Origin: Cyanophora paradoxa CCMP329 | Taxonomy: Eukaryota; Plantae; Glaucophyta | DNA: 64,000 nt | Reading direction: 5' to 3' | NCBI GenBank assembly: GCA_004431415.1 | Contig: QPMI01000039.1 | Span: forward strand, 558,001-622,000 | In this document: in pieces, positions 5,013-64,000 of the stretch | How the letters are laid out: the number at the start of each line of letters is the position of its first letter | Position numbering within the stretch: position 1 is the stretch's first letter | The notes under the pieces: model-generated | The model's database searches: none | What the model saw: only the letters and a program-made list of their open reading frames with translations | Told to the model about the DNA's origin: nothing | Program-made: the position numbers and the translations under genes

Positions 5013-7379
5013 ATGGCCAGCCGCAGCACGGGCAAGCGCGCGCGGCAGGAAGCTGATGTCGAAAGCATTGGCACGGATGAGGAGATCACCGTGGCACCCG
5101 CACAGGCATATGCATCCGTCCCGGCGCAAGTGTTGGGCGACTGCAGGCCATCTCCGACGGGAATCACGAGGATAAAAGGTACCATCTCAATCGTTGCGCG
5201 CTTTTGCGAGGCTAAGGACGCGGCAGGTCCGGCGCTCGTCGGTGTGCCGCCTTCCGAGAACTGGCAGCAAGCGCTGCTGCACGCCGCGATGCGCGATCTG
5301 CGCGTCGAGGGCCTTTCAGCAGCAGACTTAGAGCTTTACTTCTACTGGCAGCTGCCGCATCGTCGGAACTTCGCGGTTGTGGGCGCCGGCGCGCGCATGC
5401 CAGCTATCGACGATGGTTTCTTCTACATCGCGAGGAGAGGCGGAGACTGGCCCGAGACGGAGCACCATCCCTTCCTGCATCGCCTGTATTCGCAGACGTC
5501 AGCGCTAGCGTCAAGCGCGCCAGCCGCGGCCGCAGCACCGGTACCGTCGCCGGCTCCGGCTCCGGCGGCCGCGGCGGGAACAGGCGCAGCGAGCGCTGGC
5601 GCGATGTCGGCGGCGGAGGTGGCAGCCATCTTCGCGGCCGCGGCGCAGGCCGTCGTGGCGGCCAGCAGCGCGCAGCCCAGGCAGAGCGCGGGGAGCGCGA
5701 CAGAGCGGGAGCAGGACGTCGACCCGGCCGCTGTCTCGCAGCAAGCTCCGCCCCCGTCGCTGCCGCGCGGCGGGAGCGTCGGCGACAGGCGACAGTCAAC
5801 AAGCAAAGACAATGTGAGCGGCAGAGCAACCAGCCAGAGTCAGGTGGGAGTCCTTTCCTTGAAGAGTCGAGCGGGCCCGGCTGATGCGCGGTCTGCCGCA
5901 GCGGGGCCCCGCGAGCTCGTCGCCGGGGAGCGTCTCTGGGGAGTCCGCCGCAGAGCGCATCGTGTCGGAGCCGTCCTCCGCGCCGCCCACCGCGCCGGGC
6001 CCCAGCGCCGGACCCAGCCAGGTTGCTCCGGCCGCAACGCATGGATCCGTGCGCGGGGCTGACCATGCTGCGCGCAGCCGGCTGCTGCCCCGGAGATTCA
6101 GGTTTTTGGTGGAGAGAGTATCACGGAAGCCGTGGCGCGCGCCGCCCCGGGGCAGACCGTCCGCCTCGCCCCCGGCCAGTGCGCCCCCTGCGCCCCGTCC
6201 GCGGCCCTCAGCCGCGCCTCGGACCAACGCTGCCCCGCAGGTACAAGGAGAAGCTGGTGCTGAACAAGGACGTGCACATCGTCGGGCCGCCAGACGCGGA
6301 GGCCGTCCTCGAGTGGGATAAGGGGCCCACGCTGCACTGCACGGGCCCCGCGGCGCCGAGCGTCAAGGGCATCACGATCCGATGCTCGGCGCCGGAATGG
6401 CCAGCGATTTGGATCACGGGCGGGAGCCGGGCGGCCGTGGAGAACTGCGATGTCTCCAGCACCTGTCTCAGCGGCATCGAAGTCCGCGACGAGGGGACGG
6501 CCCCGACGCTGCGCGGTGGGTGCCCCGCCCCCGCCCCCCGCCCTCGCTGCACAGGAATTCCGATTCCGCGCTGCACAGGAAACACGGTGCACGACTGCGG
6601 CCAAGCGGGCATCGTTTTCCGCACGTCGGCAAAGGGCGTCGCGGAGGGCAACGACGTCTTCGGCAACGCGAACGCAGGCATCGGGATCGCGACCGGCGCG
6701 GACCCCGTTGTGCGGGCCAACAAGGTCCACGATGACAAGCAGGGCGGCATCCTCGTGTACGAGAACGGGCGGGGCACCGTCGAGGGCAACGACGTCTACG
6801 GCAACGCGAGGGCGGGCATCGCGATCTCGACCGGCGCGGACCCCGTCGTGAAGGGCAACAAGGTCCACGACGGCATGGCGAGCGGCATCCTCGTGGCCGA
6901 GAACGGGCGGGGCACGGTCGAGGGCAACGACGTGTTCGGCAACGCGAACTCGGGCATCGCGATCTCGACCGGCGCGGACCCCGTCGTGCGGGGGAACAAG
7001 GTCCACGACGGCAAGCAGGGCGGCATCTTCGTGTACGAGAACGGGCGGGGCACCGTCGAGGGCAACGACGTCTACGGCAATGCGAGCTCGGGCATCCAGA
7101 TCAGGGAGGGCGCGGACCCCGTCGTGCGGGGCAACCGGTGCGCCCGCGAGCTCCTCTATAGCTGCGCCTCCTCCCACCCCATCTCCCCCGCCCCTGACAC
7201 CGGCCCCCCACAGGGTCCGCAACCAGCAGTTCGGGATCTACGTATACGAAGGCGGCAAGGGCACCGTTTCGGGCAACACGATCGAGCGCATCTCGGACCC
7301 GTCCTTCGCGCCCTGCGGCGGCGTGAAGGTCCTCGACGGCTGCACGCCGGTCGTGCAGGGGAACACGTTCCGCCCGTAG
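5013..7379 (+). CDS. Protein with an unknown N-terminal domain, a low-complexity linker and a C-terminal right-handed parallel beta-helix (PbH1/CASH, FBXO11-like repeats)
   Basis: In-frame splice path: 5013-5843, 5902-6021, 6078-6178, then 6241 onward with two further introns, stop TAG 7377-7379. Repeats such as GNDVYGNARAGIAISTGADPVVKGNKVHDG. Confidence 0.8.
6644..7137 (+). repeat. 138-bp (46-aa) coding tandem repeat, 3 full units plus a partial unit
   Basis: GAGGGCAACGACGT recurs at 6644, 6782, 6920 and 7058, exactly 138 bp apart. Confidence 0.95.
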
Positions 7380-7519: not shown

Positions 7520-10500
7520 GGCGGGGGGCGCGGGGGCGGGCGCGGGGGCTTCGGGCGGGCGGGCGGGTCGACGTCGGTGCACTCGGAGGCAGTGGCGCGC
7601 CGCGGCGCGGGGCTGAGGCCGGCGGCGGCGGCCCCCGGATCGGGGGTCGAGGGGTGGGCGGGGCCCCTCCCTTCGACTCCTGTGGAGCTAGCTATAGAGG
7701 GATCAGGGGTGGAGGGGTGGGCGGGGCAGCTCCCTTCGACTCGGCGACTGCGACGGCGAGCTCCGCTCCCTTGAGCGGAGCATGAGCTTGAGCGGAGGCG
7801 GCGGGGCGCGGGGGTACCGGGCGACCGTACGCGTCCCCGACAGGTGCCTGCGGCCCAGAGGCCCGGGGGTCGGTCGCGGGTCGGGGGTACGTGCCTTGCA
7901 CATGTACAGCTGCAGGTGCTGACGCCAGCCTGACGGCGCGGGTCGCTCGCCGCGCGTGCACGCCAAAGGCGGAATTCAAAGTTCACAGGGCGCGATCTGG
8001 AGCCGGCGAGGGCGGCGAGGGAGCGCGCGGAGGCGGCGGGGCGGGGCGGGCCGCGCGGGGGCGGCGGGCGGCGGCTCGGCCCTCAGACGAGTCGGCCCGC
8101 TGCCCGCCGCGCCGCACCAGAGGCGGTCCAGCGGCGGCCGGGGGAGGAGGCGGTCGGGGCGAGGACGGATCGGAGCCGGCGGGGCGGGGGCGACGGGGCG
8201 CGGGGGAAGCGAAGGGCGGGGGCGCCTCGGGGCAGGGGCCCTGCGGTCGAGCCCGGGGCGAGGGCGGGGGCGGGGGTGGGGGCGGGGGCGGGGAGGGGGG
8301 AAGGGGAGCGGGGAGGGGAGGGGGACGCGGAGCCGGAGTAGGGGGGGAGCAAAGAGAGGGGGAGGGGGAGCCGGAGCGGGGGAGGGCGGGGCGGAGGGGA
8401 AGAGCGTCGGCGAGGCCCGAAGAAGAAGAGATAAGGCGTTCAGGTGAAGAGAAGAGTGAAGGGAGAAGGAAGGAGCGGCTCGCTTGCGGACGGCCGGGCG
8501 GGAGCGGCCCGCGGGCCGGGCGGCTCGGTGGCGGCTAGGGAAGGGCTTCAGAAGGAGGGGAGGGGGAGAAAAGCGCCCTCTGCTGGGGCGGGGCGCGGGG
8601 CGGGGGACGGGGGCGGTGCCGGAGCGGCGCGGATGGGCGGGGCGGGGGCGAGCCGACGAGGGAAGCGGGGTGGGGGTGGAGGTGGGGTGGGGTGGGGGTA
8701 CTGGGCCAGGGACCAGGGGTCGCGTAGCGGGGGGAGGCGAGGCCCCCGCGGAACCCTCGGGAGAGGAGGTCGGGCGGGAGCTTCAGAGGGAGGGCGGGGG
8801 GCGCCGGGGCGCCGGGCAGGGCGGGGAGCGCACGCGTACGGGAGGCGCAGAGGCGGCGGAGGGCCCGCCACAGGAGGCGGGGGCGGGGACCGGAGACGTA
8901 AAGGGCGGCGGCACGCCAGCGGCAGCAACGCGGAGGAGGAGGCCGGCGGGGCGGCCCCGCGGCAGTCCACAGAGGCTCGAGGGGAGAGGCGCGTCGCGCC
9001 GGGCGCCGATGCGGAGCGGCTATGAGCTGAGCGGACGCGTCAGCGGGATCGGGATCGGATCGGGGAGGGCAGGGCGGAGGGATCGGACCTGCTCGGCGTG
9101 CGACTGCGCGAACTCAGGCGGCCTCGGACGGGGGGACGGGGGAGAGGCGGGGCGGGGCGAGGGGCGAGGGCGGGGCGGGGGCGCCCCGGCCCCGCTCACC
9201 GGCGAGCGCGCGGAGGCGCGGGGGCTGCTGAGGCGCCGGCGCAGGAGCGGACTCCGGGAGGTCCACGGCCGCCCCGGGCCCAGGCCCGGCGCGAGGCGGG
9301 GCGGGGGGGCTCCCCGCAGGCGGCCCGACGGGGGCGCCCGGCCCGCCCGCTCGCCCACGCGGCGCCCGCACCGCTCCTGCGCCGCGGGCGGAGGCGAGGG
9401 CCCGGGGCGGGGCGGGTGGGGCGGGGTGGGGCGGGGTGGGGCGGGGTGGGGCGGGACGGGGCGGCGGGGGGTACCCGCACCGAAGGATTACGGGGCGGGC
9501 GGCGGGAAGTGTTCTCCGCGGCCGGCGGCGCCGAAGCCGGCGGCGGTGGGTCCGGCGGAGAGGCGTGGCTTCGGGTTCTCCGCCCTGCGGTCACGGCGGG
9601 ATCAGCGAGAGCCACAGAATCACTGAGGCGGGCGTGCAGGCGGCTCGGCGAGCGCCCTCGGGTCAACGGAGGAGACGGGCGGCGGAGGGGGCCGGTAAGA
9701 GGGGGCTCAAGGAGGGGAAGACGAGCGAACGGTGCGGGTGGTAGGGGGGAAGCGCCAGAGATGTGGAGGGCACGGGGCGCAAGGGAAGGGGAAGTGGTGG
9801 GAAGGGTAGCGGGCGAAGAGGGGTACAGGGCACGGGAGGGGGTACGAGGGAGGGGCAGCAAGGGGCGTGTGCGGGCTGCAGAGAGGACGTGCGCGGCGGG
9901 GGTGGACAGGGGCAGGGGGAGGGGTAGGAAGGGGAGGAGAGCCCGGAGGGCCGGTCCCAGGCGTCTGCGCCCCCCGCCTTGTGCTTATATCAGAGCTGCT
10001 CGCGATCGGAGCTGGAGCCGGGGCGGGGATGGGGGCGGGGAGGCGCCAGGGGCGGGGGCGGGGGAGAGGAGGCAGAGAGGGAGGCGGAGGGCACCCTGCC
10101 GCGGCGCGGCGCGGCTCGGCGGGGGAGGGGCGGGGCGGGGGAAGAGGGTGGCGCTGAGGCGAGGCCTAGGAGCGCCTGCGCGGCCCGCCGACGCGTCCGC
10201 TGGCCGCGAGAGGGGCTGAGGACCCGGGGCGGCCGCGAGGGGCCTCCGGCGGGGCGGCCCGAAGCTGAGCGGGGGAAGGGGCGGCGGAGAACTTCGGAAG
10301 GCGTCCGAGGCGCATCGGGCGGGGCCGCGGGGCTCGGAGGGGGGCGGGGGGCGACGCCTCGAACTCGCCTCCGATGAGGGGCGGAGGCGGCGGAGGCGGC
10401 GGCGCAGGAGGCGCGCGTGCCGGCGCCCCGTGAGCCCGCGAGGGGCGGACGGGGGAGGGGAGGGGCGAGGCCATGGGGCGCCCGAGGCCGGGCGGGGGGC

Positions 10501-11590
10501 GGGGCGGCAAGGAGGGCGTCCCGGGGGAGCCCGAGGGCGGGCTCGGGCCGGCGACCCGGGGAGGAAGGCGCGGGGGAGGAGCGGGAAGAGGAGCGTGAAG
10601 CGGGCGCTTCCTCGCGAACGAAGCCGCCGGCGCGGCCTCCTCCTCGCCCGCTGCGCTCACCACTTCGAGTACCCGGGGGGCGCTTCGGGGGGTACCGCAG
10701 CCCTCTTCCTCCTCCGCCCCGCCCCCCATCGCGGCCTGCGCGGGCGCCTCAGGGGCAGGCCGCGGCGGCAAAGAACGGGAAAGAAGTTGGTACCCTGGCT
10801 GCCTCCTCCCCCGCTGTCCCTCCTCGTCGACTTCGCTCACTCGTCTCCGAGTTGGAGGCGGAGGAGGGCTCAGGGAGGGGGGGGAGGGGGGGGGAGGGGG
10901 AGGAGGAGGGGTTAGGGGGGGGGAGGGGCCGGGGGGGGGGGGGGGCGTAGGAGCGCAGCGCCGGATATGTGGAGGGCAAGGGGCGAGCAGGGGTAGCGAA
11001 AGAGAAGGGGAGGGGCGGGAGGGGGTAGGGGGCGAAGAGGCATGCAGGGCACGGAGGGGGTACGGGGGAGGAGCAGGAAGGAGCGTGTGCGGCTCGAAGG
11101 GCGGGCGCGGCGGGGGCGATGAGAGGCAGGGAGGGGCAGGAGGGGGAGGAGAGCCCGGAGGGCCGGTCCCTGGCGTCTGCGCCCCCCGCCCCGTGCTATA
11201 AGGAGACCGCGAGCGGGGTGGGGTACGGGAGGGCGCACACAGGGGCCTGCGGGAGGCACGGGGGGCCGGCGCTGCGGGCGGACAGGAAGCGCTCGCCCGC
11301 GCCGCCGCGCGGAGGCCCGCCGGAGGCCTCGCCGCCGGGGACCGGGGGCGGGCCCGGGCGGGGAGGGGAGGCCGGGAGGGCCACCGCCCGCCGCCTGCGT
11401 CGCCGCCTGCGCCTCCCGCTCCTCGCAAAGACTGAAAGACTCGCAAAAAAAGAGGGGCCCCGGGCCCTCTCCGAGCTCGGCGCGAGGGGCGCCGCCTCTT
11501 GCGCCCCGCAGGCGCGGCGCCGGCCCCGCGCACCTGCGCCGCAGCGCCCCGAAGCGCGCGAGCGGATGCGGTCCGACGCGGGGCCGAGCA
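7520..11590 (-). other. Possible spliced low-complexity or decayed gene on the minus strand
   Basis: The minus strand shows exon-like stretches (SEVDEEGQRGRRQP; AAMGGGAEEEEGCGTPRSAPRVLEVV) bounded by GT...GTACC donors and CTGA...CAG acceptors. No recognisable domain, and I could not build a complete ORF. Confidence 0.3.
9700..10005. repeat. Diverged partial copy (A) of a local duplication
   Basis: ATGTGGAGGGCA...GGAGGGCCGGTCCC(A/T)GGC(G/A)TCTGCGCCCC matches ~10865-11210 and ~14050-14345. Confidence 0.75.
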
Positions 11591-12110
11591 TTGGCACCGG
11601 CCGCGGCACGCCGCCTCGGCGCGGGGCCCGCGGCAGCCGGCAGCCGGCCCGCTGGCGAGAGTGAGTCTTGCTGGCCGGCCGCGGCAGCTGAGTGAGTCAG
11701 CCGAGTGAGCTAGCGCCGCCGGCTCTCGGAGTGAGCGACCGCGGCCGGCAGCACTGATCGCCTCAGACGCCTCAGATACCTCGAAAAACGCCTCAGATGG
11801 ACGCACCGATCGTCCTCGAGCTCTCGCAGCGTGCCCGGCGGCGGCGCGGCGAGGGTCCACACCGCTGAGAGCCAGGGACGAGCGCTGCGAAGGGAGGCCG
11901 CCGCTGCTGCGGGAACCGGACGCTGCGCGCGCTGCCCTCGCTTTGGATCCTCGCTCCGGTACAGGTCCGGTCCGCGCTGCTGAGAGGCGTCGCTGGAGCG
12001 CGCGAGGGACGAGCGCAGTGTGGGAAAGGCTGCGCCTACTGCGAGAATTGAAATCTCATCACCGCAGAGCTGCGCGAGTCTTCCAGCGGGACCCGCCCTC
12101 GGCTTGGACT
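10555..12110. repeat. Copy B of a ~1.4-1.5 kb direct duplication
   Basis: Colinear blocks shared with 13743-15050, e.g. CCCATCGCGGCCTGCGCGGGCGCCTCAGGGGCAGG, ACTGAAAGACTCGCAAAAAAAGAGGGGCCC and GCGCGAGCGGATGCGGTCCGACGCGGG. Confidence 0.9.
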
Positions 12111-12154
12111 ACCCGTCGGCGCGTCCGTAGACATACCCGTCCCTTAGATGGCCC

Positions 12155-13218
12155 ATGGCCGCGCAAGCAGCGACGGCTGCCGAGCGCGTCCTGAGCCACT
12201 TCAGTAAGTGGCAACCGGCTTACCTCTCCGGAGCCGCTGTCATCGGGATCTTCAGCGCCTTCGGACAGTTTTGCTACAATCTGGGCGCGGCGGTGCGTGT
12301 ATTGCGCATTTCTTCCGCGCACGGCATGCCAACTTGCGTTCGTCCAGGGGAGGGAGCAGGAAGTGAACGTCCTCAAGGCGCGCGTTAATCACATTTCTCC
12401 TCAGCATGAAGCTCACAGCCGCGTGCGCAGGAGAAGCTCGTGCATGAGAAGGTGCGCGTGCTTGAGCTTCGTGCATGCGCGGGGTGCCGCGCGCTGGCCC
12501 GGCCGGGCATGCATCGCGCGCATTTTCGCAACTATAGCTATAGCTAGGAGCGCTAGCTCACTGCCGCGTGCGCAGGAAAAGCGCGTGGGTGCAGAGGTGC
12601 GTTGAGCGTGCACGGGATCCCGCGCGCTCGCCGTGTTCGGGCATCGCATTAGCTGCTTCTCACAGCCGTGTGCGCAGGAGAAGCTCGTGCATGAGAAGGT
12701 GCGCGTGCTTGAGCTTCTTGCATGCGCGGGGTGCCGCGCGCTGGCCCGCCCGGGCACATACATGCATTGCATTTCCGCTTCTAGAAGCTCACAGCCGCGT
12801 GCGCAGGAAAGGCGCGTGGGTGCAGAGGTGCGTTGAGCGTGCGCGCGCGGGATCGATCCCGCGCGCTGGCCGCGCTGTGCGCAGAAGAAGCTCGAGGGCG
12901 AAAAGGTTCCTTCACGAAACGAATTACTCGATCGGCGCCTGACGCATTCGGCCTGAGCCTCGCGGCAGGAGAAGCGAGCTTCGCTGCAGGCGGACCTCGT
13001 CTACGCCCAGGGAAAGGTCCGCAAAGACCAAGACCACGTGCACGGTCGTTGTCTTTGCGAAGACGACCATTCGAATTCTGCAGGCCGCGATTGCGGACGT
13101 CTTTTCTCAATTCTCAAAGCGCCACGACCCTCAGTCTATCGCCAAGACGATGGTGCGCCTGAAATCCTTCTACTCCGTGGATATGTTTGATTTGTTGCCA
13201 CAGGAGCCGTCGGAGTGA
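12155..13218 (+). CDS. Orphan micro-exon gene: N-terminal hydrophobic segment plus a coiled coil from 21-nt exons (~134 aa)
   Basis: Exons 12155-12292, 12348-12377, 12431-12451, 12576-12596, 12678-12698, 12807-12827, 12885-12905, 12969-13016, 13084-13152 and 13204-13218. All are phase 0, with CAG acceptors and GT donors (one GC). The path gives an open frame to TGA. Confidence 0.75.
12408..12860 (+). repeat. Tandem duplication of a two-exon/two-intron unit (~230-250 bp)
   Basis: GCGCAG|GAGAAGCTCGTGCATGAGAAG|GTGCGCGTGCTTGAGCTTC occurs at 12431 and 12678. GCGCAG|GAAA(A/G)GCGCGTGGGTGCAGAG|GTGCGTTGAGCGTGC occurs at 12576 and 12807. Confidence 0.92.
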
Positions 13219-13742
13219 GGGGTGCGGACGTGTTACGAGTGAGGTGTGCGAACTTGTCATGGCCCATCCATCAATTCATCTCCTTTGCCCCAGCTTCAGC
13301 GCCAGCCTGCCCTCTCCTGAACTTGCTCCCTCTCGAAATCCTATTCCGTCCCGCCAGATTCGATCGCGATGTAAGAGCCCGTCCCTCTCCCGGCAGTATA
13401 CGTGCGCATGCATGTACAGTAACGTCAATGTCGATCTTATCTTAAAGGCGCCTTCTTGCCTGGGCGATGCCGATCGACTTTGGAGGCCGGGGTTCCGAGT
13501 TCGACCCTGCGACCTCCCTCGCTGCCGTCCGCCTCTGTGCGAACTAGCTCCGCCCCCGCCACCCCCCCCCCCTCCCCCCCCCCTCCCCCCTCCCCTCCCC
13601 AGTCTACACGCGGTGTACCCTAGTCTACACGAGGGCGGCCGAGGAGGGAGGAGGGGACCCGCGCGAGAAGGAAAGGGCGGCGGGAGACCGGCGGGGAGGA
13701 ACAGAGGGCCCCCGGGCGGGGCGGGGCGGGGCGGAGGGCGGG

Positions 13743-15050
13743 GCCCGGGGAGGAAGGCGCGTGGGAGTCGCGTGGAGGGGAGCGTGAAGCGGTGGCTCCC
13801 TCGCGAATGAAGCCGCCGGCCGCCTCCTCGCCCGCCGCGATCACCCTTTCGAGTGCCCCGGAGACGCTCCGGGGGAGTACCGCCCTCCTCTGCCCCCTCC
13901 ACCTCGTCCCCCATCGCGGCCTGCGCGGGCGCCTCAGGGGCAGGTCGCGGCGGCAGAGAGAGGGAAAGAAGTGGGTACCCCGCCCGCCTCCTCCCCCGCT
14001 GTCCCTCCTCGTCGACTTCGCTCTCTCGTCCCCGCGTTGGAGACGGGGGAGGGCTCAGGGAGGGAGGGAGGGGGGGTGGAGGGGGGAGGGGAGGGGAGGG
14101 GGAGGGGGGGGGGTAGGAGGGCGGCGCTGGAGATGTGGAGGGCAAGGGGCGACAGGGGTAGCGGAAGGGAAGGGGGAGGGACGGGAGGGAGTAGCGGGCA
14201 AAAGGGGGTGCATGGCACGCGGGGGAGGGGCAGGAAGGAGCGCGTGCGGCTTTGAGGGCGGGCGCGGCGGGGGCGGAGAAGGGTAGGGGGAGGGGAAGCG
14301 GAGGGAGGGCCGGTCCCTGGCATCTGCGCCCCCGATAAGGAGACGGCGAGCGGGCCGCGGGGGGTGCGAAACGGCGCGCACAGGAGCCTGCGGGAGGTGC
14401 GGGGGGCCGGCCCTGCGCTTTGGAGCGGACTGGAAGCGCTCGCCATCGCCGCCGCCGGCCCGGGGCGGGGAAGGGGGGAGGGGGCCGGGAGGGCCCCCGC
14501 CCGCCGCCTGCGCCGTCCGCTCCTCGCAACTGAAAGACTCGCAAAAAAAGAGGGGCCCCGGGCCCCTCTCCCGGAGGGGCGCCGCCTCTCGCGCCCCGAA
14601 GGCGCGGCCCCCGCGCACCCGCGCCGCAGTGCCCCGAAGCGCGCGAGCGGATGCGGTCCGACGCGGGACCGAGCATTGGCACCGGCACGCCGCCTCGCGA
14701 TCGGCGCGGGGCCGCGCATTGCTGCCGGCACGCGGCGGCTGAATGCCACGCGGGCCTCGTCTGCCGGCTGGCGGGAGCCATGGCCGGCCGCGGCAGCTGA
14801 GAGTGAGCCGAGTGAGCCGGCGCCGCGAGTGGAGTGAGCCGCCGCCGCGGCCCGCCGGCTCTCGACTCGCGACGCACCTCCTGAGAAAGCGATGGAACGC
14901 GGCGGGACTCAGCGATAGTCCTGCTGAGAGGCGTCGCTGGACAGCGCGGGGACGAGCGCTGCGAGGGGAAGGCCGCGGCTGCTGCGGGGACAGAAGGCGC
15001 TGCGCGAGGCCTCCAGCGGGGCCTGACCTCGGCTTGAACTCTGGCCTGGC
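13743..15050. repeat. Copy C of the direct duplication
   Basis: Colinear with 10555-12110 (see copy B). Confidence 0.9.
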
Positions 15051-20100: not shown

Positions 20101-20858
20101 CTCGGCGCCGCTGAGAACAAGATCAAGGCGCTCGAGAACTCGGTACCCCGTCCCCTCCCCCTCGCCTCGGTAGTACCCCCCCCCCCTGACCCGGCCGCCC
20201 CCTCCCCCAGATCGCCCAGGCGGACGGCAAGGTCCAGTCGCTGTCGGCGGACAAGGCGGCGCTGGCGCAGCAGCTGGCGGGCCTGAAGGGCGCCGAGGGC
20301 CAGATCAAGCAGCTGACGGCGGCGAAGGAGTCGCTGGACGCCAAGCTGCAGGCGGCCGCCGACGAGAAGGCCGGCCTCCAGCAGCAGCTCGCGGCGCTGA
20401 AGGACGCGAGCAGCAAGCTCGCGGCGCTCCAGAGCGACAAGAGCAAGCTCGAGGCGGCCGTGCAGTCGGCCAAGGAGCAGGTCGCGTCGCTCCAGGCGGA
20501 GAAGAAGGAGCTGACGTCGGCGGCCACCGCCGCCGAGCGGACCGCAAAGGCGGCCCAGACGGAGGCCGAGAAGGCGGCGGCGGCGGCGGCCAAGCTGGAG
20601 CAGCAGCTGGCGTCGACGCAGGCGGAGAAGTCGAAGCTCAACTCGGACATCACGGCGCTGAAGACGGAGAAGGGCGAGGCGGTGCGGTACGCCTCCATGT
20701 CCGAGGCCAAGATCCGCGAGCTCACCTCCAAGGTCCCTCCTCCCTCCCTTCTCGACTGACTGATTGCTTCCGAGCCTTCTTCTCCTGCTGATCCCTCTCT
20801 CTCTCTCTCTCGCTCTCAGATCGCGAAGCTCGAGTCGCAGCTCAACGGCGACGAGTAG
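17200..20858 (+). CDS. Plastid-targeted protein: transit peptide, hydrophobic segment, globular domain, long C-terminal coiled coil
   Basis: Starts MSNAFATFLVP, then a Ser/Thr/Ala/Arg-rich transit-like region. Many short in-frame exons and heptad-rich A/E/K/Q/L exons at 19080-20858. Stop TAG 20856-20858. Confidence 0.8.
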
Positions 20859-59941: not shown

Positions 59942-62354
59942 ATGGACTTCTTCAAAGCGATCAGCGACTTCTTCTCCGGCGACAGTGCCGCCGCCCCGCG
60001 AGCGCAGGTGCGCCGAAGTCGCTAAGTTGTCACACCGCCATCCTCATTGCGATTCCACTGTCCCAGGGCCCGGCGGACGCGGCGGAGTACGACTTCGACC
60101 TGTTCCTCTCGCACAAGCAGACGACCGGCGGTGACCTCGCCGGCCGCATCAAAGTCGAAGTGCGTCACCGCACGCGGCCATGGCCAGCGCGCGCTCGCCC
60201 CGTCCTTACGAGCTCCGCGGGCGCAGCTGGAGGCGCTTCGCCCCGGGATCCGCGTCTTCCTCGACGCCGACGCGCTCGGCGATATCCACGACCTCGCAGC
60301 GATCATCCGAAAGACGCGCTGCTTCGTCCTCCTCCTCACCCCGGGTGCGCCCCCCTTCCATCCCGGCCCTCCAGTCGGGGCCCACCGCCGCCCACGCGCG
60401 CTTGCGCCGCAGAGTGGCTGGAGAGCATGTTCGTGCTGCGGGAGCTCGCGGCGGCCGTCCGCTCGCAGCGCCGCATCCTCGTCGTGTGGGACCGCGAGCG
60501 CCTCCCCAACTTCCCCCAAAGTGCCCCCGCCCCCCCCTCAGCTGCCCGCTCCCCGGCCGCTGAGGCGCCGCCAGTCGACTCGCGGACGGCGCTGCCGCGC
60601 ATCGACGAGATGCATGACGCGGAGCTGCGCTGGACGCTGCAGCGCGTCCTCATGATCAAGGCCCGCCCGCCTGTTCCGCCTCGCCCCGCTGGCCCCGCCC
60701 CGCCTCGAGCCCAGCGCAGGCGGTGCAGTACATGCGGGAGCGGGCGCTGCGAGAGGCGGCGCTGCGGGAGATCCTCGAGCGCTGCGACGCCGCGCAGCCC
60801 TTCCGCATGGACGGCGAGCCGCCGGCCGCCGCCGCCGCCGCCCCGGGGCCCATCAACCACGGGGCCGGCCGGCCCGCGAACACGGCGCAGGTCGGCCCGC
60901 CACGCCCCCGCGTGTCTAGGACCCTCCGCTCACCAGAGCAGCAGGGGGCGGGGGCGGGCGGGGCTGGGGCGGCACGCCCGCCCCCGCCCCCGCAGCTGCC
61001 GCCGGGCTGGAGCGTTGCCCAGACCCCCGACGGGCGCACGGTCCGCCCTTCCCCCGCTCCCCCGCTCGCTTCTCCCCCTCGCTGAGGCCGCCGCGGGCAG
61101 TACTACTGGCACGAGGCGACGAACGAGACGCAGGCGAGCCGCCGGCGCTCTACAGCTCGACGCCGCTGCCCTGGGCTGTGCGGCTGACTGCGGCCCCGCA
61201 GTGGGAGCGCCCCACACCGCCAGCCCCGCCGCCCCCGCCGGGCCCTGCCGGCCCCCAGCGCCAGGCCGCCCCCGCCGCGGTGTGCTGGGGTTGCAATAGC
61301 CTTCCCAGCGGGAAGCAGCTGCGTTCTGACCGGCGCCACGCGTAGGCGGCCGGTGCAGGGGAGATTCTGGTGCGGCCGGGGGAGAGCATCGTGGCCGCTG
61401 TGGTGCGGGCCGCCCCAGGGCAGACCGTCCGCGTCCAGCCCGGCCGGTGCACATGTGCCCCGTCCCTGGTCCCGAGCCGCGCCTCGGACCGACGCGGCCC
61501 TGCAGGTACAAGGAGCAGCTGGTGCTGGACAAGGATGTGCACATTCACGGGTCGCGGGAGGCCGTCCTCGAGTGGGACCAGGACGTCACGCTGCACTGCA
61601 AAGGGCCTGCGGCGCCGAGCGTCAAGGGCATCACGATCTGCAACACGGCGCCGGAGGAGCCCGCGGTGTGGATCACGGGCGGGAGCCGGGCGATCGTCGA
61701 GGGCTGCGATGTGTCCAGCTCTGGCAGCAGCGGATTCCAAGTAAAAGACAAGGGGACGGCCCCGACGCTGCGCGGTGGGCGCCCCAGCCCACCCCCGCCC
61801 CCTGCCCTCCGTTTGACCGATTCCGCGCTGCGCAGGGAACGCGGTGCACGATTGCGGCGGGGCGGGCATCATCTTCCACACGTCGGCGAAGGGGGTCGCC
61901 GAGGGCAACGACGTCTACGGCAACGTGAACGCGGGCATCGAGATCAAGACTGGTGCGGACCCCGTCGTCAAAGGCAACAAGGTCCACGATGGCAAGGCGG
62001 GCGGCATCTTCGTGAATGAGAACGGGCGGGGCACGGTCGAGGGCAACGACGTCTACGGCAACGCGCTGGCGGGCATCGAGATCCGGGAGGGCTCGGACCC
62101 CGTCTTCAAGGGCAACCGGTGCGCCCTGGAGCTCCTCTGTGCCTAGTCCCTCCACATCTCCTCCGCCCCTGACACCCGCCCCCCGCAGGGTGCACGACCA
62201 GAAGTACGGGATCTGCGTGCGAGACGGCGGCAAGGGCACCATTTCTGGGAACACGCTCGAGCGCATCTCGGACCCGTCCTACGCGCCCTGCAGCGGCGTG
62301 AAGGTCCTCGACGGCTGCACCCCGGCCGTGCAGGGGAACACGTTCCGCCAGTAG
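59942..62354 (+). CDS. TIR domain + WW domain + right-handed beta-helix (PbH1/CASH) protein
   Basis: Spliced in frame. TIR: YDFDLFLSHKQTTGGDLAGRIKVE|LEALRPGIRVFLDADAL..CFVLLLTP|EWLESMFVLRELAAAV..ILVVW. WW: LPPGWSVAQTPDGRT|YYWHEATNETQ|WERP. The beta-helix runs to VQGNTFRQ* (TAG 62352-62354). Confidence 0.88.
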
Positions 62355-62767: not shown

Positions 62768-64000
62768 CTAGATCAGCCTAATTATAAGCCATCAGACGCC
62801 GTTGCGGCAGCGCGCCTTGGCGCTGACGGTTCTGAACGCTGACAAGCATGGGCCAAGGTCGCGTCAGTCTGCGGTGGCGGCGGCACACACTTGGCCAAGT
62901 CCACGACCGTCGTGGGCATCGGCTCCCGCGGCCAGCTTGAGCTGGGCGACACATTCGATGGTGCCTATGCGCCGCCTGCCGGCGCCTGGCCCCTCCGCCC
63001 CGCGCGCCGCCCCGCGCGCGCCTTGGCCCCCAGCATGACAACCGGGGACAGTACTAGTCTGCTGCGGTGCTGGCGGCGGCATGCACCTGGCAAAGTCCAC
63101 GACCATCGTGGGCATCGGCTCCCGCGGGCAGCTCGAGCTGGGCGACGCATCCGATGGTGCAATGCGCCGCCCCGCGCGCCGCCCCGCGCGCGTCTTGCAT
63201 TGGCCCCCGTGCCGCTAACATGGAGCGCGCGCCCTCTGCCTCAGTGTCGCCGAGCGACCACGAGGCGCGGAAAGAGAGCGCGCGGGGAGAGAAAGCCCCC
63301 GACGGCCCGGCCGCGAGCAAGTACAAGAGCCTCAGAAGGCGGCCCTCCTCGTGCGCTGCCCCGCAGTGCTCCGGCCCGCGCCGCCCGCGCCGCGCCGCGC
63401 CGCGCCGCGGCGGCCGACGGGCGCCCCGCGCCCCGCAGCATCGCGTTCCTCAAAGCCGAGCTCGGGAACATCAAGACGCTGCAGGGCGAGATCCGCCGCG
63501 TCATCGACGACCTGAGCCACGGTGCCTCGAGCTCGCGCGCGCGGGCGCGCGGGGCGTCGCAGCTAAAGCGACGCCGGGGTGGGGCGGGCAGACGCGGAGG
63601 GGGAGCGGGGCCTGGCGCTGGAGGTGGCGCAGGACGGCGTCCACGCCACCGCCGCCGTGGCGCAGGACGGCGTCCACGCCACCGCCGCCGTGGCGCAGGA
63701 CGGCGTCCACGCCACCGCCACCCTCCTGGGCGGACGGCCGGCGACGCGATGCGCGCCCTGCACGCGATCTGGAGGGGCGGGCGCAAGGTCCCCGCCCGCC
63801 CCCCTCGCCCCTCCCCCGCGCCCCCCGCGATGCGAGGCGCAGCGGGTCTTCGACCTGCTGGGCGGGGACGGCATGCTGTCTCTCTTTCAGATGGCCCGCG
63901 AGGCCTCCCGCGTGCGTCCGGCGGCGCTCGAACCCGCAGGGGGCCGCTTTCTTTCTCTCTGTCCTTAAGAGGCCGCCCGCAGGTGGAGGTGATGGAGAAG
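62768..64000 (+). pseudogene. Decayed duplicate of the 5' part of the 51935 gene (runs off the window)
   Basis: Matches 51861-53150. Exon 1 is present twice with the original start out of frame, there is an internal 33-bp expansion, and sequence matching ~52730-52990 is deleted. Confidence 0.82.
63624..63722 (+). repeat. 33-bp tandem repeat x3
   Basis: GTGGCGCAGGACGGCGTCCACGCCACCGCC(GCC) at 63624, 63657 and 63690. The parent gene has a single copy. Confidence 0.93.

Follow-up and report, generated by a model that had tools for sequence, protein, structure and literature searches.

Genes that encode one repeat per exon, and that grew by tandem exon duplication, include those for collagen, with its 54-bp Gly-X-Y exons, and those for the modules of nebulin and titin. 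At the protein level, small bitopic proteins composed of an N-terminal hydrophobic helix and a coiled-coil stalk are exemplified by bacterial FtsB/FtsL and by subunit e of the mitochondrial ATP synthase, while single alpha-helix (ER/K) domains are characterized by a very high E/K/R content and the absence of helix breakers. The micro-exon genes (MEGs) of Schistosoma carry about 80% of their coding region in symmetric exons of 6-36 bp, and their products are secreted or anchored and vary through alternative splicing (PMC5825161). MEG families grew by duplication, and some of the MEG products are amphipathic helices (PMC5825161). The improved genome assembly of the glaucophyte alga Cyanophora paradoxa, which was annotated with BRAKER1/Augustus, has a GC content of 67.6%, 9.2 introns per gene and a mean intron length of 86 bp, and the authors of the genome warn that its gene models need curation (PMC6704402).

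In this study, we characterized a C. paradoxa gene in which exons of 21 nt, each the length of one helix heptad, are arranged in a short tandem array. The gene is located in a stretch of 64 kb that was analysed as a whole (hereafter the window; GC ~70%). The original prediction, made from the sequence alone, had described a micro-exon gene that was invisible to ORF-based annotation and that encoded a membrane-anchored coiled coil of splice-tunable length, with one heptad in each of five 21-nt exons. We estimate with a probability of about 80% that the locus is a transcribed gene without relatives, that part of the helix of its product derives from duplicated 21-nt exon units, and that its observed mRNA has a product of 86 aa.

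The coding sequence starts with the ATG at 12155, and an in-frame TAG is found 27 nt 5' of this codon (12128-12130). In the all-spliced model of 134 aa, the coding sequence is interrupted by nine introns, every one of them in phase 0 as predicted, and ends with a TGA at 13216-13218; exons 8, 9 and 10 of this model, the last one counted to the stop, are 48, 69 and 15 nt long (Table 1). The start codon, the 46-aa exon with its hydrophobic stretch and the 30-nt exon of the original prediction all match the sequence, and so do the five 21-nt units, each of which lies between GCGCAG and GT and encodes the expected peptide.

Table 1. Exons and introns of the gene, with the RNA contigs (runs X1, X3 and X8) in which they or their joints were found
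Feature	Position in the window	Strand	Description
Exon 1, coding part	12155-12292	+	138 nt, 46 aa; Gly/Ala/Ser-rich hydrophobic segment at residues 22-46
Intron 1	12293-12347	+	55 nt, GT-AG, phase 0; joint 12291>12347 (cut +1) in X1 and X8
Exon 2	12348-12377	+	30 nt, GREQEVNVLK; RNA contigs and translation
Intron 2	12378-12430	+	53 nt, GC-AG; joint 12375>12429 in X1
Micro-exon 3 (unit A)	12431-12451	+	21 nt, EKLVHEK; spliced on both sides in X1; equals the 21 unplaced letters of the X8 contig
Intron 3	12452-12575	+	124 nt, GT-AG; joint 12449>12574 (cut +2) in X1
Micro-exon 4 (unit B)	12576-12596	+	21 nt, EKRVGAE; X1, X3 and X8
Intron 4	12597-12677	+	81 nt, GT-AG; joint 12594>12676 in X8
Micro-exon 5 (unit A')	12678-12698	+	21 nt, EKLVHEK, identical to exon 3; X8, and also X1 and X3 through alias placement on exon 3
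Intron 5	12699-12806	+	108 nt, GT-AG; joint 12696>12805 in X8
Exon as observed in RNA	12807-12905	+	99 nt, contiguous in contigs of X1, X3 and X8; consists of unit B' (12807-12827, ERRVGAE), 57 nt (12828-12884) and the fifth unit (12885-12905, KKLEGEK)
Annotated 'intron 6'	12828-12884	+	57 nt, 77% GC; near-perfect hairpin; kept in the observed mRNA
Intron 7	12906-12968	+	63 nt, GT-AG; joint in X1, X3 and X8
Exon 8	12969-13016	+	48 nt; to be coding, it requires removal of the 57 nt or readthrough of the TGA
Intron 8	13017-13083	+	67 nt, GT-AG; joint in RNA contig
Exon 9	13084-13152	+	69 nt; RNA contigs and translation
Intron 9	13153-13203	+	51 nt, GT-AG; joint in RNA contig (cut +1)
Last exon	13204-13459	+	stop of the 134-aa model at 13216-13218, then 3' UTR; poly(A) addition site near 13459

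The read search covered 14 runs guessed to be RNA, which belong to eight studies, plus DNA-like runs from 2012. Contigs of three runs from three studies (X1, X3 and X8) were compared with the locus, and a DNA-like run from 2012 (X15) served as the DNA control. The RNA evidence thus consists of assembled contigs, which display the dominant path and drop minor isoforms, and the classification of the runs as RNA, in itself a guess, is backed here by splice joints and a poly(A) tail. Introns 1-5 and 7-9 are spliced out as proposed in the contigs of X1, X3 and X8, with GT..AG joints on the + strand that match the model to the base for introns 1, 3, 4, 5, 7, 8 and 9. A 733-nt contig of X8 reads through exon 1, exon 2, 21 unplaced letters, exon 4, exon 5, the stretch 12807-12905, exon 8, exon 9 and the last exon up to 13459, beyond which five A's and then the Illumina adapter follow; together with the splice joints, this end demonstrates that the runs are cDNA and marks the poly(A) site.

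The 21 unplaced letters of the X8 contig are attributable to exon 3 because this exon is identical to exon 5, and the exon 2-3 and exon 3-4 joints are seen directly in X1. An apparent skip of 355 nt (12449>12805) is likewise an alias of the exon 5-6 joint, since exons 3 and 5 are identical 21-mers; the X3 contig has exon 4 before the 21-mer, and therefore exon 4-5-6 is the sole possible order. No exon-skipping joint was present in the contigs of the three RNA studies, and exons 3, 4 and 5 are joined consecutively and included in all RNA contigs seen. The X15 run covers the whole stretch without differences and contains no splice joints, so the array is unlikely to be an artefact of the long-read assembly. 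Taken together, three successive 21-nt exons are truly spliced in a polyadenylated mRNA from the + strand, and the proposal of a real spliced gene that uses 21-nt phase-0 exons is borne out by a transcript and joints in three RNA studies. The number of such exons has to be corrected: exons 3-5 of the five that had been proposed are verified by RNA, but units 4 and 5 lie in one 99-nt piece in all three RNA runs, and the removal of intron 6 is the one predicted junction that was never seen.

Intron 2 is of the GC-AG type, because the 30-nt exon 2 has GC, not GT, at its 3' side; this was missed in the original prediction. The joint has a 3-letter ambiguity, and canonical ends (GC..AG) are obtained solely with the +2 cut. 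A single T>C change turns the unit donor, GTGCGCGT, into the donor of this intron, GCGCGCGT, and the 3' end of the intron is the shared CTCACAGCCGCGTGCGCAG. At the other end of the transcript, the abundant RNA contigs have their 5' ends at 12143 and 12152, and a low-depth contig extends upstream to 11900. An ATG at 12148, 7 nt 5' of the start and out of frame with it, opens a uORF of 19 codons with the stop TAA at 12205-12207, which is relevant only to transcripts that start upstream of about 12148.

Contrary to the expectation that it would be invisible to annotation, the gene is already present in a public set of gene models. A search with exon 1 (region 1-46 of a 77-aa genomic ORF) returned a single match, the 134-aa EukProt protein designated here as P0001, which is the Augustus model tig00000157_g9699.t1 of C. 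paradoxa and is identical, letter for letter, to the all-spliced model; the style of this name and the traits of the genome agree with the improved assembly (PMC6704402). Word searches with exon 1 and P0001 returned P0001 alone. Pfam searches with exon 1, exon 9 and P0001 gave nothing above noise (sole match, Macoilin, E 0.83), and the PDB sequence search with P0001 gave only noise at E>0.5 and no relative with a solved structure. HMMER found no relative of P0001 among 1.84 billion representative proteins; four weak matches to long coiled-coil proteins of 481-1598 aa, all over the charged helix, were rejected as relatives and taken as compositional. The best score in the ESM Atlas features of P0001 was 0.80, which is below the meaningful level, a metagenome scan with a degenerate unit pattern gave no match, and no assembled contig or transcript encoding exactly P0001 is on record in the collection. 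The gene (tig00000157_g9699) is real, transcribed and polyadenylated, and it is without detectable relatives in these searches.

The surroundings of the gene have features of their own. Its flanks are GC-rich and of low complexity, and the region at 8-12 kb has a GC content of 78-79% and a strong purine skew; on the + strand of 8000-12000, the two 2-kb windows have a GC skew of +0.37 and +0.21 and an AT skew of +0.37 and +0.24, i.e., an excess of G and A. A poly-C tract (13548-13600) is located just 3' of the gene, and a poly-G tract (14057-14121) follows 450 nt further on. The regions 6643-7135 and 61900-62116, 55 kb apart, share in-frame tandem repeats of 138 nt (46 codons) that are 81-89% alike and whose translation resembles a Gly/Asn/Asp-rich protein repeat of the beta-helix type. 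Degenerate repeats at 20224-20667 encode a Gln/Leu/Ala/Lys-rich, coiled-coil-like protein, seemingly in one long exon, in contrast to the micro-exon-encoded helix at 12.4 kb. Two 90-nt copies at 62875-63160, 196 nt apart and 90% alike, may represent a duplication of an exon+intron unit. Pfam revealed no family in nine long flanking ORFs, and Rfam revealed none in the whole 64-kb window.

Repeat finding and alignment agree with the original proposal that the array grew by tandem duplication of exon+intron units. The pattern GYGCAG-N21-GTGCG has four matches in the 64-kb window, all inside the array, where 0.21 would be expected from shuffles. Adjacent exon+intron units are homologous, including their splice signals: introns 2, 3, 4 and 5 share a 3' motif of ~19 nt, CTCAC(A/T)GCCG(C/T)GTGCGCAG, and the 5' portions of introns 3-6 are homologous as well, over some 35-45 nt. 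The similarity of unit A (EKLVHEK) to unit B (EKRVGAE) is 65-76%, and together they form a block that recurs after ~247 bp. The copies of this two-unit block are 93% identical over the aligned columns and 97% identical over the first 98 nt, with 1 base change in 42 exon bases and with indels confined to the introns; the intron ends next to the duplicated exon pairs are preserved to about the same degree as these pairs. The fifth unit shows similarity in its acceptor and exon (81% over 32 nt), and the intron on its 3' side is unrelated. The array escaped Tandem Repeats Finder owing to the indels between its units. The alignments show that the exon+intron unit went through at least two rounds of duplication, the last of which was recent: an older split produced units A and B, and a recent duplication of the A-B pair produced the copies that are now 93-97% alike.

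Like the MEGs of Schistosoma, the gene has a run of short symmetric exons, with lengths that are multiples of three, between longer terminal exons, as well as a hydrophobic N-terminal exon and a history of growth by duplication; the short exons are of 30 and 21 nt, and the nine introns are all in phase 0. Unlike in MEGs (~80%), the micro-exon share is ~36%, that is, 93/258 coding nt in the observed mRNA and 147/402 in the all-spliced model, where exon 2 (30 nt) and the 21-nt exons are counted and the latter figure adds the 12 coding nt of exon 10. Alternative inclusion of exons is documented for MEGs, whereas none was seen here in the contigs of three RNA runs, from which rare variants are dropped. 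In addition, no sequence relation to MEGs was detected among the 1.84 billion representatives, and the gene belongs to a glaucophyte alga, whereas MEGs are genes of a flatworm. Its way of working could in principle be that of a MEG, but the gene is not a member of this group.

The class of repeat-per-exon genes formed by tandem duplication is a better fit than the MEGs. The gene shares with this class the presence of one structural repeat per exon, introns of the same phase and position, and unequal tandem duplication of exon+intron. The duplicated exons are found as such in the mRNA in the case of exons 3, 4 and 5, but no splicing takes place between units 4 and 5 in the observed mRNA, unlike at the unit boundaries of repeat-per-exon genes. 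The gene also differs from those of the collagen/nebulin/titin type in that its unit exon is only 21 nt, equivalent to one helix heptad, and that its array is short (4-5 units).

The structure of P0001 was predicted with AlphaFold2 without an alignment. The model consists of a short helix at residues 2-17 and a long helix of 95 residues at residues 26-120, with a mean pLDDT of 80.8 and values of >90 over residues 50-110. The predicted order of a hydrophobic N-terminal segment (residues 22-46) and a long helix is thereby reproduced. As for the proposed membrane anchor, the hydrophobic segment is indeed present at the N-terminus, but its Kyte-Doolittle maximum in a 19-residue window is 1.45 (residues 22-40 of P0001), below the usual transmembrane threshold of about 1.6; a putative membrane anchor is possible and plausible, though marginal. 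With 49% charged residues and five glycines in 61 residues, the region of residues 47-107 does not have the composition of a single alpha-helix (ER/K) domain. Strongly hydrophobic residues occupy two adjacent heptad columns instead of an a/d pair, with one consistently hydrophobic position per heptad.

Two copies of residues 47-120 modelled as a homodimer gave a score of 0.41, compared with 0.00 for the best of three controls, in a test that eukaryotic proteins may pass through memorization by the model. Among microbial proteins, the dimer mark was attained by 21 of 30 whose solved structure is a pair of one chain and by 0 of 23 whose solved structure is a single chain. The corresponding figures for eukaryotic proteins were 17 of 29 pairs, with only 1 of 7 among those without an older solved relative, and 0 of 30 single chains. 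Contact agreement in the dimer runs was at least 96%, and the pLDDT of the partner was at least 86. In the model, the two chains run parallel and in register, and the heptad pattern, in which each 21-nt exon begins at heptad position f, continues without a break over residues 48-112. In the micro-exon part of the dimer, L and R alternate at position a and E and A at position d, and an invariant V occupies position b; the predicted core is weak and polar. The in silico model supports self-association of the helix, and the coiled coil is a prediction of moderate confidence. The idea of one coiled-coil heptad per exon holds arithmetically, at one heptad per 21 nt, but is weakened by these polar residues in the core. 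Like FtsB/FtsL and ATP synthase subunit e, the product would be small, and its hydrophobic segment, rich in small residues, would precede a charged helix for which parallel pairing is predicted. It differs from these proteins in that it has no Pfam, PDB or profile match, that its transmembrane status is marginal, and that its core positions are polar.

The observed mRNA and the annotated model part ways at intron 6 of tig00000157_g9699.t1. Its joint, 12827>12885, is absent from the contigs of X1, X3 and X8, and the annotated 134-aa product thus requires a splice that is seen in no contig. The 57-nt piece reads GTG CGT TGA in frame, with the TGA at 12834-12836; therefore, the observed mRNA encodes 86 aa, ending in ERRVGAEVR, rather than 134 aa, and the last three exon junctions are formally in the 3' UTR. 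The retained 57 nt flag the public gene model as a likely error, or as a minor isoform.

The CTCAC motif found at the ends of the sister introns 2-5 is missing from the retained piece, the fold of which has a minimum free energy of -37.7 kcal/mol (z -2.86); the last 28 nt of the piece are free of A except for the A of the acceptor AG itself. The hairpin and the missing motif may lie behind the retention, an explanation that we hold loosely, since introns 1 and 8 are spliced though they, too, have no strict yTnAy motif. Positions 12845-12868, within the retained 57 nt, form a perfect palindrome of 24 nt around GGGATCGATCCC, whereas the sister intron 4 has only GGGATCCC at the corresponding site (12611-12626). 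The difference between the two sites looks like the result of a 4-nt GATC duplication and an expansion of a GC repeat.

Downstream of the TGA, a coding signature is still discernible. The GC content at the three codon positions of exons 8-10 (GC1/2/3) is 0.63/0.42/0.77, and 21 of 5000 shuffles reach this difference in any frame. In frame 0, GC3 is 0.77 compared with a GC2 of 0.40, and exon 1, exons 2-7 and exons 8-10 each show the periodicity on their own; there is none in the 3' UTR and the 57-nt piece. From the codon pattern in exons 8-10, it follows that these exons would have been coding until recently, or would still be so in a minor isoform. A minor form with exons 6 and 7 spliced, or a low-level skipping ladder, might exist, given that contigs drop minor isoforms.

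The same periodicity, which is in the right frame at a level reached by so few shuffles, is also what would be seen if retention of the hairpin were a regulated switch, in which the unspliced form encodes the 86-aa stalk and the spliced form, produced in unsampled conditions or at a low level, adds 48 residues. The length of the piece, 57 nt, is divisible by three, its ends provide a GT donor and a GCGCAG acceptor, its fold is stable, and it was called an intron by Augustus trained on RNA-seq. However, the splice appears in no contig of the three studies, the collection holds no assembled transcript for the 134-aa product, the piece is devoid of the CTCAC of the four spliced sister introns and of A in its last 28 nt bar the acceptor AG, and periodicity would outlast a recent loss of splicing as well. 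We regard a switch of this kind as unlikely.

Another view is that the transcript is spliced but non-coding, or that the gene is in decay or has only begun to arise, with an untranslated ORF and with 21-nt units that are a minisatellite with chance splice sites. It would account for the absence of relatives in Pfam, PDB, the word search and the 1.84 billion representatives, for the stop in the major mRNA, which is premature relative to the annotated model, and for the out-of-frame upstream ATG at 12148; moreover, long frames arise by chance at such a GC content, and frame 1 of the mRNA is open over ~190 codons. This view is difficult to reconcile with the frame-0 GC periodicity, which all three exon groups display, in contrast to the UTR and the retained piece, with the coherent succession of a hydrophobic segment and a helix of high predicted confidence, and with phase 0 in nine of nine introns. 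The exon pairs of the recent duplication, differing at 1/42 bases, speak against it too, although the adjoining intron ends are about as well kept. We consider it improbable that the locus is non-coding in this sense.

It is quite improbable, in our judgement, that the 57-nt hairpin piece is conditionally spliced or that the 21-nt exons are skipped in conditions beyond those sampled. If this were true, the alga would set the length of a helical stalk, or its C-terminal end, by splicing, and MEG-like variation would occur outside animals.

In organisms whose introns are very short, exon skipping should be a rare event. Regulated skipping of the 21-nt exons that yields a ladder of helix lengths, as in the splice-tunable ruler or variable surface protein of the original prediction, is highly improbable: every unit is 21 nt long and in phase 0, so that any skip preserves the frame, and such exons serve protein variation in schistosome micro-exon genes (PMC5825161), but the contigs of the three RNA studies contain no skip joint apart from the alias 12449>12805 of the identical exons 3 and 5, the micro-exons account for only ~36% of the coding sequence, and the introns of the host are very short (mean 86 bp; PMC6704402). 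Since all RNA contigs are consistent with the inclusion of every one of exons 3-5, variable protein length through splicing is unsupported.

We thus favor a transcribed gene without relatives whose array of 21-nt units was built by duplication and whose observed mRNA encodes 86 aa. The product begins with the 46 aa of exon 1, which include a marginally hydrophobic, Gly/Ala/Ser-rich segment, and then, as predicted by modelling, forms one long charged alpha-helix; part of this helix is encoded by the arrayed 21-nt exons, all in phase 0 and each accompanied by a short intron. Such a protein could function as a small helical stalk, possibly membrane-associated and possibly a parallel dimer, and the length of the stalk would shift over evolutionary time via unit duplication, not via regulated exon skipping. 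The downstream exons would be a remnant of a recently longer coding sequence, or part of a minor isoform.

The gene is a young one that was lengthened by exon+intron duplication; it is ordinary in kind, and no long-standing question is opened by the locus. Of greatest use among the new findings are the three 21-nt exons proven by RNA, the GC-AG sister intron, and the retained 57 nt that distinguish a product of 86 aa from one of 134 aa. The locus provides an RNA-backed case of three consecutive 21-nt spliced exons, each corresponding to one turn-pair of a helix, and a gene caught in the act of lengthening its helix by exon+intron copying, with the most recent copies 93-97% identical; micro-exon arrays are accordingly not confined to schistosomes.
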